NCBI GenBank assembly: GCA_028534125.1
Contig: CM052842.1
Span: forward strand, 1,612,001-1,676,000
Direction: 5' to 3'
Source of the DNA: Lama glama
Taxonomy: Eukaryota
Length of the DNA stretch: 64,000 nt
The position numbers and the translations under genes are program-made. Below the pieces are notes generated by a model, which searched no databases, was not told where the DNA came from, and was given only the letters and a program-made list of their open reading frames with translations. Positions 22,332 to 64,000 of this stretch are shown piece by piece; position 1 is the first letter of the stretch; every line of letters starts with the position of its first letter.

Positions 22332-23006
<675 letters not shown>

Positions 23007-55159: not shown

Positions 55160-55659
55160 NNNNNNNNNNNNNNNNNNNNNNNNNNNNNNNNNNNNNNNNN
55201 NNNNNNNNNNNNNNNNNNNNNNNNNNNNNNNNNNNNNNNNNNNNNNNNNNNNNNNNNNNNNNNNNNNNNNNNNNNNNNNNNNNNNNNNNNNNNNNNNNNN
55301 NNNNNNNNNNNNNNNNNNNNNNNNNNNNNNNNNNNNNNNNNNNNNNNNNNNNNNNNNNNNNNNNNNNNNNNNNNNNNNNNNNNNNNNNNNNNNNNNNNNN
55401 NNNNNNNNNNNNNNNNNNNNNNNNNNNNNNNNNNNNNNNNNNNNNNNNNNNNNNNNNNNNNNNNNNNNNNNNNNNNNNNNNNNNNNNNNNNNNNNNNNNN
55501 NNNNNNNNNNNNNNNNNNNNNNNNNNNNNNNNNNNNNNNNNNNNNNNNNNNNNNNNNNNNNNNNNNNNNNNNNNNNNNNNNNNNNNNNNNNNNNNNNNNN
55601 NNNNNNNNNNNNNNNNNNNNNNNNNNNNNNNNNNNNNNNNNNNNNNNNNNNNNNNNNNN
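55160..55659. other. Assembly gap (exactly 500 N)
   Basis: Run of N. The round length suggests a scaffolding placeholder of unknown true size. Confidence 0.99.
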
Positions 55660-57077: not shown

Positions 57078-57150
57078 AGCGACCTGCTGGATGTGAACCA
57101 GATCATCAAGGACTTGGCCTCCATGGTGTCAGAGCAAGGAGACGCCATTG
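57078..57150 (+). CDS. TSNARE1: TSNARE1 coding exon 10, Qa-SNARE N-half including 0-layer Q (SDLLDVNQIIKDLASMVSEQGDAI)
   Basis: Acceptor ttccacag|AGC and donor ATTG|gtgggt. 73 nt, phase 0-1. DVNQIxKDLAxMxxxQG syntaxin SNARE motif. Confidence 0.94.
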
Positions 57151-58406
57151 GTGGGTACCCACGCCATCTGTCAGGCCACCTGCCCCTCCCCCCGGTGTGG
57201 GGCTGGGGCGGCTTCTGGGGTCTGAGTGTCTCCCCAGCCCCTCAGGAAGGCCGGGCAAGGGAGACCCAGGCCAGAGGTTGGCCCGCCCCTTCTCCTCACT
57301 GAGGAGCGCTGGCCTGTGTGCCCCCTGCCCTGGGCCTTCCTCCTCAGCCAGGGGCTCCCCAGGGTGAGGACCAGCTGTCTGGGGGGCGTCAGACTGCAGT
57401 GGGTGCCCCAGCGGAGGGCGCTGGACGTGGCACCACCGTGGAGTGCCGATCCTGCTGCTGATTCACCACGTCAGCCACTTCTCAGGAAACGTGGGTGGTG
57501 GGGACAGGGCTGTGCAGGACGAGCCGTTGTCCCTGCTGTTCCTTCCACGTGAGAGCCTCCGCCCCACCAGCCCGGTGCCCACACCCTGCGGCCATATGGC
57601 TTCTCCTGAGTGCCCTGGGCGCCCGAGCAGGAACTCACCACCCTCTGGCCTAGAAGAGTGGCTCCTGGTCCCCAGAGCCACTTGCCAACAGTCAGCTCCC
57701 GGCCAGGACCCCAGGGCTCACCCACCCAGCCTCTCTACCTGTTCCCCGGCTGAGCTGTTGCCTCACCAGGGGCCCCGCGGCTGTGAATAAGCCTCTCGCC
57801 TCTCAGCCTGGGTGCCGTGGAGCTTCTGAGGTCCAGGCATGTGCTGTTCCCTGGCGGGCAGCCCAGCCGCCCCCCTGCCCTAGGAGGGCGACTGGACAGG
57901 GTTGGGCCGTGACGCTGGCAGGCTTGTCCTCGCTCCCACGGGATCCCGCTCCTCAGCCTGGGCAGCTCCAGTGGGGCCGCCCTGTCACCCCTTCACAGCA
58001 CCTCTTGCAGGACCCCCCCCTCCACCTCTGGCTGGCTGTCTTGGGGCGGTGTGTGCAAAATGCTTTGTACACTCCAGATGGATGCCCCGGTGTCTACAGA
58101 TGGTCACTCAGTCCTGCTCCTGGACGATCAGGAAGGGATCGTCTCCCGGTGGGGAGGTGGAGAGGGCTGACCTGCTGCAACCGTGTAGGGGCCCGGCGGA
58201 GGGGTGGGCACCTGGGGACCAGAGTAGCCAGGAGCCAGGACCCCACTGCCCCCTGATGTGGGTGTTTCTAGGGTGATGGACGTTGGGCTGGGGCCACTGT
58301 ACCCTCTCCAGGGGGCAGTGGGGGCCTGGGACCAGGATTCTGGGGGTTCCCTGCTCTCCATGGCCCGTCCCATCTGCTGCCCACTCAGCCTCTGGTGCCT
58401 TTCCAG

Positions 58407-58865
58407 GGTCCAGAAGCAGCCAAGCCACATGCCAGCGGAGCTCCAGCCCCGAGCCGGCCATGGCGGCCCTGCTGTCCGGGCCGGGCTGCGTGCCCCTGCG
58501 GCCGAGCTCCCACTCCCGCACCAAGACCCGGAAGCCCAACTTCAGCCCCCAGGAGACAGAGGTGCTGGTGCAGAGGGTCACGCGCCACTACCCGCTGCTG
58601 TTCGGGGCGCTGCGGGGCCCGCCCGCCCGGAAGCATCGCGTGTGGAGCCGCATCCTGCAGGCGGTGAACGCACTGGGCTACTGCCGCCGGGACCTGGGCG
58701 ACGTCAAGCACAAGTGGCGGGACCTGCGCGGCGTGGTGCGCCGGAAGCTGGCCGAGCGGCCCCGGGCCCCTGGCCCCGTGCTCACGCCCGTCGAGCGCAT
58801 GGTGGCCGAGACCTTCGCAGTCCCGGGCCCCCCGGGCGAGGGCCAGGCCGCAGAGCCGCTGCCAA
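58407..58865 (+). CDS. Second, paralogous Myb/SANT-like exon inside the SNARE-splitting intron (putative alternative TSNARE1 exon or nested Myb gene exon); 459 nt, phase 1-1
   Basis: Acceptor gcctttccag|GG and consensus donor CCAA|gtaagt. Open frame (ORF 58283..58909) encoding [18 protein letters not shown]...[37 protein letters not shown]. 57/76 aa identical to the exon-3 core by manual alignment. Confidence 0.85.
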
Positions 58866-61800
58866 GTAAGTGGTCCCTTCACCGCCTGCAAGGGGCTTCC
58901 AGCGCATGACCGCCGAGAGCAAGATTAGGGGAGAGCGGAGGCCCCTTGGCATCTAGATGGGGGCATGGAGGCTCAAAACCAGGGAGTGCAGGAGCTGAGG
59001 CTGAGTCAGGTCGGCCCTGGCCCGGGCTTGGGGGCATCTGGGGTTGTCCCATGTGACAGTGCGGCCACCAGCCTCCAGAAACCCACAGGAGCTGAGGTGC
59101 AGGTGAATCGCTGGACTGCTCGTGGAAAGCCGTCACCAGCCCAGCTCAGCTCAGCTCCCTGCCCGCTGTGTGCCCTATCTTGGGTGTAGGGGAGGGAGTA
59201 GGGGTGACCGCACCCTCCCTCTGACCCCCTCATTGTGGGGGCCCCTCTCCCCGGGTCGCAGCCCCCAGACCAGGCCAGGCCAGAGCGCTATCTGGAGGCT
59301 CTTAGCTTCCTAGGGCAGGCTGATCCCCTCGGAGCCCGTGGGCCCACCTCCAGGGCCCACCTTTTCAGAAGGGTCTGTACCTGGTGAAGAAGACGCGGGT
59401 GGCACAGTGCCTCTGACTCCGGGGCAGGGCTGGCTCACTCCTGCCGCCTGCAGCGCCTCCTCCTGCCCGCTCCGCCTGCTCCTCGTCCTCCTCCTCAAGA
59501 CACCTCTGAACCTCGTCAGGAGCGCCCTTCACCTGCTGTCTGCATGCAGCGGCTCCGCCCACAGCTCAGAGCTGAGTCCTGCTGGACCCTTCCCCACCCC
59601 TTCCTGGGGAGCTGCTGGGAAGACTGAGGATGAAGCCAGAAGCAGGACCACCTCCCTCTTGAGGGCTGCAGAGTGGACAGCAGGACTCAGCCTCGTGGGG
59701 ACAAGCAGAGGCCCCAGATGCCACCAACAGAGGCCCCAGCAGACCTTCTAGTGGGGGGTCTGTGCAGAGCAAGCCTGGGCCAGTCAGAGATGCAGGCAGA
59801 CCCCGACGTGGCCGTGCCCTGGGCTGGGCTTGGTCGTGGGCCTGAATGATGGGGTGGGGTGGGGCCCACCTGTTAGTCCTGGGGAGGCCACCCGCTCTCC
59901 TACAGGCATAGCCAGACCTGGTTTTGGGGTGCTGAAGGGCGGGCAGCGGGCAGCATGGGTGTGGCCCTGGGTGCTCCGACCTTCCCATGAGCCCCCAGCC
60001 CTGGAGTGAGGTGGGAGCTTGCGACTGCGCTTGTCCCCTGGGTGTGGTGCTTGGCTCAGAAGGCTTCCTGTCCACCCTGGTGGGCCAGTGCCCCCTCCGC
60101 CAGACCCCATGGCTCCCCTCCCGGGCTCTCCTCCATCAGGGCAGCCAACCGGCTGGTCCCTTAGTGCTGTGAGCTCTGCGGGGAGTGGCCGACACCATGC
60201 CGACGGGTCCTGAGATTTGTTAAATGTGTGAGAGCAACGTGGGGTGAGGCTGAGGCCAAGCAGGGAAGTGGCTGCAGCGCCTGGTTTTGGGGGTGATGGT
60301 GGAGACCACAGCTGGAGGCCCAGCCCCGCCAGCGCTGCCCTCTGGGTCGGCACTGGCCTGGGGCTGAGGCACGATCCCGGCGTACGGGCATCTCCCGGCT
60401 GTAGGGCTGAGGAAAGCCCGCTGGCCGCGTGTAGGGCCCCCCAGGGGTGCCTGTGCCTGGGTTCCCCCCACTTGGACTGGGCTTTGCAGGGCTGTCCCCG
60501 GTCAACCTGGAATCTTTATGACGAGGTGAAGGGGGTGGCCCGCGGCCAATGAGGCGTCAGCACCATAGGCCGTGTGGTGGGGTGCCCCCGCTTGCCTGGC
60601 AGCCCCCAGGGCCCAGGAGAGGGTCGCTGGCCACGAGCCAGGGGTCTGCTTGTACGGTGTCCCAGGGTGGAGCCGTGTGTGATCTGGGGGCTGAGCAGAT
60701 CTGCGATCCAGCCCGGGGGCCACAGGACGTTTGTTCTCTGGGCTGTGTGCACCTTGGCCGCCGGGGGCGCTTGCCTCTGGGATGTACGCTACCATCAGAG
60801 TCAGGCTCCCTGCCGCGGGGCGCCGACTCGGTGCAGACCAGGGCTGGGCAGTCTGAGGGCAGGTCCCCGCGCAGCCCAGAGCGTGTGTGGTTGCAGGTCA
60901 GAGCGAAAAGCCAGCTAGGAGTGTGACCCCAGCTCACGGCTGGCCCAGACACTGCTGCCCGCCAGGCACAGCCACCTCTCTCTGTGTCGGGGCTCCGCCA
61001 GGTTGTTGCCGACAGAGTCTGGAGCACAAGGTAGCTCCTAGTCACGTTGTTGGTGGTGGCAGGGGCGGGGGCCTGGGTGGGTGCCCTCCCCCGACCCCCC
61101 GCAGGGCTGGTCCTGCCTCGGGGCAGCTGCGTTCCTTCTTCCTCATCTAGGCTGGCTGGAGAGGCACCACGGGAGGCCTGCGCCCCTGGCAGGCGGCAAA
61201 GGCACCCTGCAGGCCCCAGCTCCAGGAGGGCCCGCCCACACCCTCTCCTGGTGGGGAGCACACCCACGGGGCCTCAGGACGCCGAGCCGGGGCGGTTCCC
61301 GCCTTTGAGGGGACCTTGCCGGCCTCAGGCCTCGGGCGGCGCCCAGGTGCACAGCTGCAGGAAGAGGAGTGATTTGAATCCAGCCATTTCTGCCTCCAGA
61401 GCTCTGAAAATGTGTGAATTTGGAGGCGTGTCTGCTCTTCCTGGAAGAGTTCATTTCACGTGTTACTGCGTCTGGTGCAGCGGCAGCAGCTGGTCTGTGC
61501 TGAGGGCAGCGCCCCTGGCTGCGGGCTCTCAGCTGCTCATCTGCGGGCACGGGGCTCTTTCCCATTCATTGGTAGAAGACACTGCGCAGGGGGGTCCTCA
61601 CCTGGATTCAAACCCGGTTCCTTGCAGGGTCGAGTGCCGCAGCCCTAACTCCCCACTGCCCTGCATGCCCCTCGGCGGTGGGGTGGGGACGGGTCTGGTG
61701 CATGGTTTACATGATGCTGCCTTTTAACCGCTGGCATCGCTGAGCGAAATCTTCAGGTTTCCGCGGGCAGCCCCTGGACCTCGTCAGCAGCTCAGGTGTG

Positions 61801-62291: not shown

Positions 62292-62374
62292 ATAGTATTG
62301 AAGCCGGCCTTGAGGCTGTGTCCTCACACACAGAGGCGGCCAGCGAGCTCCTGGCCGGAGCCAGCCGGCACCAA
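62292..62374 (+). CDS. TSNARE1: TSNARE1 coding exon 11, Qa-SNARE C-half (DSIEAGLEAVSSHTEAASELLAGASRHQ)
   Basis: Acceptor gatttgcag|AT and donor CAA|gtaagt. 83 nt, phase 1-0. Completes the (I)DSIE...A..YQ/HQ syntaxin motif. No transmembrane exon is seen before the window ends. Confidence 0.94.
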
Positions 62375-64000
62375 GTAAGTCAGTGTGAGGGGACAGCCCG
62401 TGGCCCGGGAGGGGCAGGTCTGCAGGGTCTTCTCTGAGCTCAGGCGGACTGCTATGGGGAGCGGACAGGAAGGGGCTGCGGGCCCAGGGCGGTCAGCACC
62501 GCCTCCCGTCTGGTTTGCACCCCCACCGAGGGGGCGGCCTGGGGTCTCTGCCTGCTGGCTCTGCCAAGCGAGAGGACAGGGGTGCGTGGCCAGCTGTGGG
62601 AGTGGCCGGGGCTCCCAGGATTGTGCCGCATCCCCGAGCTGCCCCTGCAGGACGTTCCATGGCTTCTCTCGTTTTTCTCAGAAGGCTGGGTGGGTCTACC
62701 CTCGTCTGCTGCCTTCCTGGAGGAGAGGGCCGCAGAGAGGGCCGCCTGGCCTCCTGCGCCTCCACCTGCCACTGGGCCAGGTGTGGCTCCATGTCTGCCC
62801 GTGGTCTGGCCCTGGGCTGGAGCTGGGGGGGCCTCCCCCCCAGGTTGGAGCAGGCAGAACTTGACTTGGGACAAGTTGGCTCAGTGAGGACAAGATCAGA
62901 CCTTTGTTTGTTTGATACGAGGCCAAGGGCAGCCTCGGGGATCGATGACGGGCCTCTTGACCCACGTTCAGTACCGGAACCCCTGGTGGGCTCAGGCCTA
63001 CGTCCATCGAGGGGTCAGCAACCGCCCTCTGCTGGCTCCCTACTGCTCACTGGCCCTCTGCTCTGTGCTGCGCCCTGACATGCAGAGATGGACCCCGCAG
63101 AGCCTGTTCCTCTGGGAGCGTGCGTCCTAGGGGTGGGGTGGGTGGACAGTCCAGTCCAGTGACACGAGGGCCCTGGCCCGGCTGAGGCAGGGCAGGCTTC
63201 CTGGGGGAGCGCCAAGCAGGAGTTGTGCTGGTGGAGAGGACAGAGGCCAAAGGAGGGGCAGCCCAGGTGAGCTCGGGACACCGCAGGCTGGAGTGCAGAG
63301 TGTGGGGGCTGTGCCGTTGGGAGTGGCGTGGAGACTGGGGAGAGATGTGGACCAGGTCCTCGTTCCGTGGGGGCTTCAGGACATCAGAGCTGTGCTGGCA
63401 AAGGGGACTGTAGTTGCCCTGGGGGGAGGAGAGGCCTCAGGGCGGTGGTCTGGACCGTGCAGGGTCTGTAGGTGGGGCAAACAGTGGGAAAGGGCAGGAC
63501 CCCTCCTGGCACCGCGTCTGCTCCCTTCCCACACCTCCCCTCCCTCAGGGAGCCAGGTGGGCAGTGCGCACGCGGGACCGGCAGCCGCAAGACTCTGCGA
63601 GATCGTCTGAGGTTGGAGGCTGGGCCCACTGTTGGCCTCCCCTTTTGTCTGTCGGTGGCCATCAGACTTCTGAGGCAGGGGCTGGCCTCACTGGCAGCTG
63701 GTGAACGCCACACCAGTGGGGAAGCGGGACCTGCCTGCAGGATCGGGCAGAAGCAGGGCTGGAGGATGTCTGTTCATGCCCGCTGCAGGCTCTCTGCCCT
63801 AGCCACAGCCCCCACCTGCCAGCATGTGAGGGCGTCAGGCGTGGTCCCTCTAGGGCCGCCCAGCGTGAAGGTACAGGTTGCAACTGACGAACGAGGTAGA
63901 CTCATGGGAAGCCCAGGGCCTGGCCTCTCTAATGGGAACTCTCCGAACGGTGGTGCCTGCCAAGGGCCCTCACCTCCAGAAAGCTTCATCTCACCTCGAG

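Follow-up and report, generated by a model that had tools for sequence, protein, structure and literature searches.

A second Myb exon in the SNARE-motif intron of llama TSNARE1: annotation, conservation and predicted products

The MybB exon and its surroundings

The window analysed here is a 64,000-nucleotide stretch of the Lama glama genome (assembly GCA_028534125.1, contig CM052842.1) that carries exons of TSNARE1 (syntaxin 20), all on the forward strand. Its SNARE exons were placed by tblastn of public TSNARE1 proteins. The upstream SNARE exon (human 'exon 11'; positions 57078–57150) ends in phase 1 after ...SEQGDAI at layer +1, while the downstream exon (human 'exon 12'; 62292–62374, 83 nt) is entered in phase 1 and left in phase 0; its first bases, AT at 62292, complete a D codon (G|AT), SIEAGLEA... 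follows, and it ends with CAA|gtaagt at 62374. The heptad register of the Qa-SNARE motif in syntaxins has a glutamine at layer 0 and a hydrophobic residue four positions on at layer +1. Since the exon at 57078–57150 ends just past ...SEQGDAI, the intron that follows cuts the SNARE motif after layer +1. This intron holds the second Myb exon of the gene ('MybB'; 58407–58865), an alternative exon of 459 nt and phase 1-1. Because the upstream exon ends in phase 1 and exon 12 is entered in phase 1, the form that skips MybB and the form that carries it as a cassette are both in frame. A run of 500 N (an assembly gap or mask) occupies 55160–55659, in the intron preceding the layer +1 exon.

The acceptor of MybB (...cctttccag|GG) lies at 58406/58407 and its donor (CCAA|gtaagt, with gtaagt at 58866–58871) at 58865/58866; the acceptor region at 58393–58408 (16 nt) is identical to that of the N-terminal, exon-3 Myb copy ('MybA'). 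The phase-1 frame is stop-free, with 152 full codons from 58409, and the exon thus has canonical splice sites and a frame compatible with alternative use. The translated exon contains a Myb/SANT trihelix core at 58529–58753 (residues 41–115), which hmmscan assigned to Pfam Myb_DNA-bind_5 (PF13873) with an E value of 9.3e-20 and 70.8 bits; this is the whole domain (profile positions 1–77 of 78), above the curated cut-off of 21.7, and places MybB in the family by profile score. The preliminary description, which had reported a second intact Myb exon, open and of phase 1-1, bounded by a canonical acceptor and an A|gtaagt donor and placed in the phase-1 intron between ...SEQGDAI (57150) and 62292 where it could splice in frame, and had proposed a profile search, is borne out on each of these points.

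Stop-free frames make up 3–4% of all 459-nt frames in this region of 61–75% GC, and other frames across the same bases are also open, for 168–208 codons. Openness is weak evidence for MybB because such frames are common in GC-rich DNA; homology and cross-species conservation together make it more than a chance open frame. Within the non-domain start of the exon (58407–58520), the motif TC[KQR][RQ]S.SPE is kept from turtle to mammal amid fast-changing sequence and may be a candidate modification or binding site.

The remaining landmarks of the window flank this arrangement. MybA occupies 22357–22848 (492 nt, phase 1-1) and matches Myb_DNA-bind_5 with an E value of 5e-25; it is the Myb-like domain of the literature and the sole other Myb copy in the window. 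The segment 21371–21492 is the camelid copy of a Cys-rich exon that in other mammals reads ECAKCWTEYGI.HFPCPSPES...C; the camelid version reads ECAKLWTQYGSHHFPRPSPESSLWDPF..., is shorter, has three of the four cysteines replaced and is skipped in the fetched alpaca RefSeq isoforms. Downstream of exon 12, parts of 62375–64000 (for example 62970–63430) are coding in older or single-species models (alpaca P0264, horse P0001 and P0151), with only about 50% identity between species and in differing frames. These extra stretches have the look of bridges made by gene predictors, or of terminal exons peculiar to single species, and not of conserved exons.

Annotated isoforms and the exons joined to MybB

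The product of MybB is identical at 151 of 152 residues to the corresponding part of the Vicugna pacos RefSeq TSNARE1 isoforms X1–X4, the single difference being P in the window for L near the end of the exon, and is 97% identical to that of Camelus. Exons were searched one by one, and full-length comparisons were made via public proteins. When the exon alone was searched against 1.84 billion representative proteins, it retrieved TSNARE1 models with two Myb stretches, MybB lying at about residue 450; those named t-SNARE domain-containing protein 1 came from horse, Przewalski horse (XP_070487226.1), meerkat, lynx and turtle. A word-index search with the Myb-plus-tail part of a mink-type protein (P0003) found more than 100 models in RefSeq, Ensembl and GenBank that span the whole of this part, from carnivores, camelids, cetaceans, equids, rhinoceros, bats and pigs, and further from ruminants, primates, elephant, sloth and squirrels. 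Three Homo sapiens models (XP_011515216.1, XP_011515217.1 and XP_011515220.1) hold MybB; the human XP proteins entered the result tables and motif counts, and alignments and trees were built without them. Two Logan-derived proteins, P0007 and P0159, are primate-like in look. MybB is also present in turtles and in marsupials, in some of which the MybB-containing form is the sole model of the gene.

The long RefSeq and Ensembl isoforms, such as Suricata A0A673VPV9, Chelonoidis abingdonii XP_074919392.1 and Equus przewalskii XP_070487226.1, hold MybB at the same junction past ...EQGD.. and show no substantive difference from the arrangement in the window. Judged from the protein models, this junction past the layer +1 exon is shared by placentals, marsupials and turtles, so the position appears fixed and the sequence no longer mobile. 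Both the MybB exon and the long isoforms without a transmembrane (TM) segment are therefore already annotated in databases and are not new. The statement in the preliminary description that long TM-less TSNARE1 isoforms exist was correct (alpaca X1–X4; XP_011515216.1), and the comparison with RefSeq and Ensembl that it proposed removes the novelty of the exon.

Our literature search found no paper that discusses the MybB exon, the long isoforms or the conserved tail. The one functional study described human tSNARE1 as a SNARE with a 15-exon model, one Myb-like domain and four isoforms, MybB not being included (Plooster et al., 2021; bioRxiv 10.1101/2021.02.09.430442); the four isoforms were validated in human brain by RT-PCR, and the authors noted that the Myb-like domain might be a mere relic of transposition. 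Its derivation from Harbinger is credited to Smith et al. (2012), as cited in 10.1101/2021.02.09.430442, and other papers on TSNARE1 merely repeat the domestication of a Harbinger element. The published 'Myb-like domain' (human exon 4) corresponds to MybA and shares with MybB its Pfam family, its phase 1-1 and the 16-nt acceptor. The two differ in what they permit: MybA lies at the N-terminus and can coexist with a full SNARE motif, whereas MybB falls within that motif and excludes an intact one.

MybB occurs in 153 of the 314 fetched proteins. From it, 123 of the 153 run into a conserved tail, among them alpaca RefSeq X1–X4; the sequence after MybB then reads T/N-DEEDE..C.W.PLRT, and the tail ends in ...GMILKVEEEV/I. 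This tail contains an acidic LWLPLRT motif, a P/S-rich linker, a 63-residue helix and the near-invariant ...GMILKVEEEV end. tblastn of Myb-plus-tail proteins gave matches in the window to all of their other coding exons and no match to the tail, which places the tail exon beyond base 64000; its frames were accordingly taken from proteins and not from DNA. Alpaca X1 (T-DEEDE) and X3 (N-EEDE) differ in a way that fits a tandem acceptor, with sites 3 bases apart, at the tail exon.

Nine of the 153 instead carry MybB as an in-frame cassette followed by N/K-SIEA... (horse and Przewalski horse X5, grey seal X1, lynx, Iriomote cat X4, slow loris X2, argali and Gopherus). The relevant product could on this pattern be a protein with a Myb domain between SNARE layers +1 and +2 and the rest of the SNARE motif and the C-terminus after it, and in the window the cassette would keep the reading frame (A|AT, read as N, then SIEAGLEA...). 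The nine public models are, however, rare beside the 123 that divert to the tail, none is found among the alpaca or camel models, and the sequence past exon 12 is unconserved and species-specific; that the cassette is the product that matters is thus highly improbable. The preliminary description had offered insertion of 153 residues or diversion to another terminal exon as alternative outcomes; among the public models, diversion is the main form and the cassette a minor one. Its view that either product would carry half a SNARE motif agrees with the position of the exon immediately after layer +1, which leaves any product that includes MybB without an uninterrupted motif.

The reading frames of the joined exons bear on how the tail is reached. 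MybB ends in phase 1 and exon 12 in phase 0, so one tail acceptor gives two frames. The Mesoplodon model, for example, reads PTRTRPPAACGYPCGRW after ...SRHQ, which is a one-base shift of TDEDEAPGCLWLPLR in the Delphinapterus MybB isoform. Mammalian models that pass from exon 12 to the conserved tail do so by ad hoc bridges, each of them different and unconserved. Since the conserved tail frame needs a phase-1 exon and exon 12 ends in phase 0, MybB alone gives consistent in-frame access to the tail among the mammalian models that were fetched.

A second route exists in turtles and a caecilian. Here ...HQ is followed by a conserved third exon of the Myb_DNA-bind_5 family ('MybC'; for example in Chelonoidis X2 and Rhinatrema LOC115085754), which resembles MybB in its phase-1 end and in being joined to the same tail; unlike MybB it sits after the complete SNARE motif, and it is only 33–35% identical to MybB. 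No MybC was detected in the fetched mammalian models or at 62375–64000 of the window. Carriers of MybC include P0305, P0304 and P0314 (turtles and caecilian), so that non-mammalian TSNARE1 shows two Myb routes to one tail, and one Gopherus model combines MybB, exon 12, MybC and the tail.

Paralogy, conservation and fold

MybA and MybB are identical at 56 of 75 residues of the core (the preliminary description gave 57 of 76). Their acceptors are identical over 16 nt, and the first third of the exons is no longer alignable. Comparison of the cores gives a dN of 0.17 and a dS of 0.43 (dN/dS of about 0.4), and a 57-nt stretch contains four differences, all synonymous. Among placentals MybB is as conserved as MybA, with identities of 0.90 and 0.87, respectively. 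The tree of Myb cores unites MybA and MybB in one group (support 99/100), apart from MybC and the other Harbinger-type domains, and turtle MybB groups with mammalian MybB (91/70). MybA is absent from all turtle models examined, and an origin of MybA in mammals only is not rejected (AU test, p 0.35). Because the turtle models carry MybB and MybC without MybA, it may be that MybA, which the literature treats as the Myb-like domain, is the younger of the two copies.

phmmer searches with the MybB domain returned NAIF1, a sturgeon Harbinger-like protein and many uncharacterized Myb_DNA-bind_5 proteins, with E values from 1e-9 to 1e-25. The tail is less clearly placed: its match to the sturgeon protein P0077 is weak (E of 8e-6 in a search of 150 sequences, with compositional bias), its profile gave no detectable similarity to the C-terminus of NAIF1, and Atlas scores of 0.77–0.78 are leads only. 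NAIF1 and the MSANTD genes are domesticated Harbinger Myb-like genes (Etchegaray et al., 2022; PMC9392472). MybB with its tail resembles them in layout, with a long C-terminal region coming after a Myb_DNA-bind_5 trihelix, in a genomic position fixed across vertebrates and in purifying selection. The two cases differ in that NAIF1 and MSANTD are free genes, whereas MybB and the tail belong to a syntaxin gene as alternative 3' exons.

Conservation of the MybB-tail part is modular, with conserved modules alternating with fast-changing linkers. The Myb core has an identity of.93 between placental pairs (mean over 14 placentals),.88 between placentals and marsupials and.88 between mammals and turtles; the corresponding values are.83,.77 and.63 for the helical segment and.85,.83 and.86 for the last 16 residues, compared with.49-.63,.21-.50 and.17-.46 for the three linker regions, where identity falls as low as.17-.27. 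The aromatic core of the domain (F, W, W) is invariant in the alignment. An AlphaFold2 model was computed for the tortoise Myb-plus-tail orthologue from a 39-row alignment. The model displays trihelix helices at 27–39, 52–68 and 76–102 and a fourth short helix, all with pLDDT of about 90, and the tail forms one 63-residue helix (pLDDT >90), with a disordered linker. The predicted structure of the tortoise orthologue shows the three-helix fold, and the alignment its spaced F...W...W core. The conserved C-terminal motif has low confidence in the model, as would be expected of a short binding motif. No relatives were found in the PDB by sequence; the nearest solved fold is the DNA-bound DNA-binding domain of Drosophila Zeste (5cqq), which superimposes on the model of the Myb core with an r.m.s.d. 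of 2.4 A over 73 columns (TM score of 0.75 on the target), the likeness being at the level of the fold only (23% identity; Foldseek E of 0.048).

MybB is also the most CpG-rich spot of its intron, with a CpG o/e of 0.79 (0.2-0.5 around it) and a GC content of 0.75, and camelid and horse MybB contain an in-frame ATG 18 codons into the exon. These features, with the stand-alone Myb-plus-tail proteins listed in Ensembl for Sarcophilus and Chelonoidis, would suit a nested gene with its promoter in the SNARE intron, encoding a free NAIF1-like protein that is not fused to the syntaxin part. The ATG, however, is not conserved, being replaced by V, A or T in meerkat, mink, lynx, marsupials and turtles, and conservation of the MybB frame starts right at the acceptor: the stretch upstream of the ATG is 68% identical among placentals and includes the TC[KQR][RQ]S.SPE motif shared by turtles and mammals. 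Furthermore, the acceptor is intact and identical over 16 nt to that of MybA, and most models begin in TSNARE1 exon 2. We therefore consider a nested gene improbable.

The same data bear on whether MybB might be a conserved-looking relic that gene predictors include, rarely spliced or confined to unproductive transcripts and with no role of its own. Support for the exon comes from predicted models only, and XP and Ensembl models can include homologous open reading frames on little transcript support; it went unreported in the human brain RT-PCR work, and open frames are common in GC-rich DNA. Among the sequencing runs listed, none that contains MybB is recorded as RNA; the whole exon is present in four small runs, of unspecified kind, from the species of the window. 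Against this explanation stand a frame kept intact for about 320 million years and a Myb core 88% identical between turtle and mammal, the alternation of conserved modules with fast-changing linkers, the dN/dS of about 0.4 between the paralogues with a 57-nt stretch of purely synonymous differences, and the maintenance in mammals of a tail frame that is consistently reached only via MybB in the fetched models. There is accordingly only a small chance that MybB is such a relic. Since conservation extends from turtle to mammal and MybB is the mammalian gateway to the tail, we would say, from these comparisons, that the MybB-tail isoform is under selection.

Predicted products and their significance

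Taken together, MybB is likely to be a real, ancient and already annotated alternative exon of TSNARE1 that is usually spliced to a tail beyond the window and would yield a product without a complete SNARE motif. Past the layer +1 exon, a transcript would proceed either to exon 12, completing the SNARE motif, or to MybB, and from MybB it would usually continue to the terminal tail exon. The diverted product would consist, in order, of MybA, the Habc domain, SNARE layers −7 to +1, MybB and the tail. It would thereby hold two predicted trihelix DNA-binding domains, and its MybB-tail portion would be laid out like a whole Harbinger Myb-like protein, as in NAIF1.

The diverting models are without the rest of the SNARE motif and without the TM segment, the latter being seen in the sheep-hybrid model P0018. 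The MybB isoform thus does not contain the uninterrupted layers −7 to +8 and the membrane anchor of a fusion-competent Qa-SNARE. Without layers +2 to +8 and an anchor, the diverted product would presumably form no complete four-helix SNARE bundle. The isoform may have a nuclear function, or it may bind SNARE partners in a partial, non-fusogenic manner. The preliminary description proposed a toggle between a trafficking SNARE and a nuclear or dominant-negative factor; such a toggle may exist, and what speaks for a function is the deep conservation together with the reading-frame argument. We infer use of the MybB junctions in camelid tissues, and likewise nuclear localization, DNA binding and the inability of the product to act as a SNARE.

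Among schizophrenia risk genes, TSNARE1 ranks as one of high confidence. A wider reading, which we advance tentatively and hold to be possible rather than probable, is that TSNARE1 makes two products, an endosomal SNARE regulator and a conserved, nuclear-looking DNA-binding factor built of Habc, half of the SNARE motif, MybB and a tail of Harbinger type, with MybA perhaps the younger of the two Myb copies and with schizophrenia-risk variation acting via the MybB isoform. The contribution of the present analysis is the combination of annotation, conservation and frame logic; MybB as the discovery of an exon is not new. What depends on MybB is a deeply conserved and apparently unstudied isoform of a schizophrenia-risk gene, which merits inclusion in studies of TSNARE1 risk variants, isoform ratios and protein function. 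If the two-product reading is true, schizophrenia-risk variation at TSNARE1 might act through the MybB isoform.
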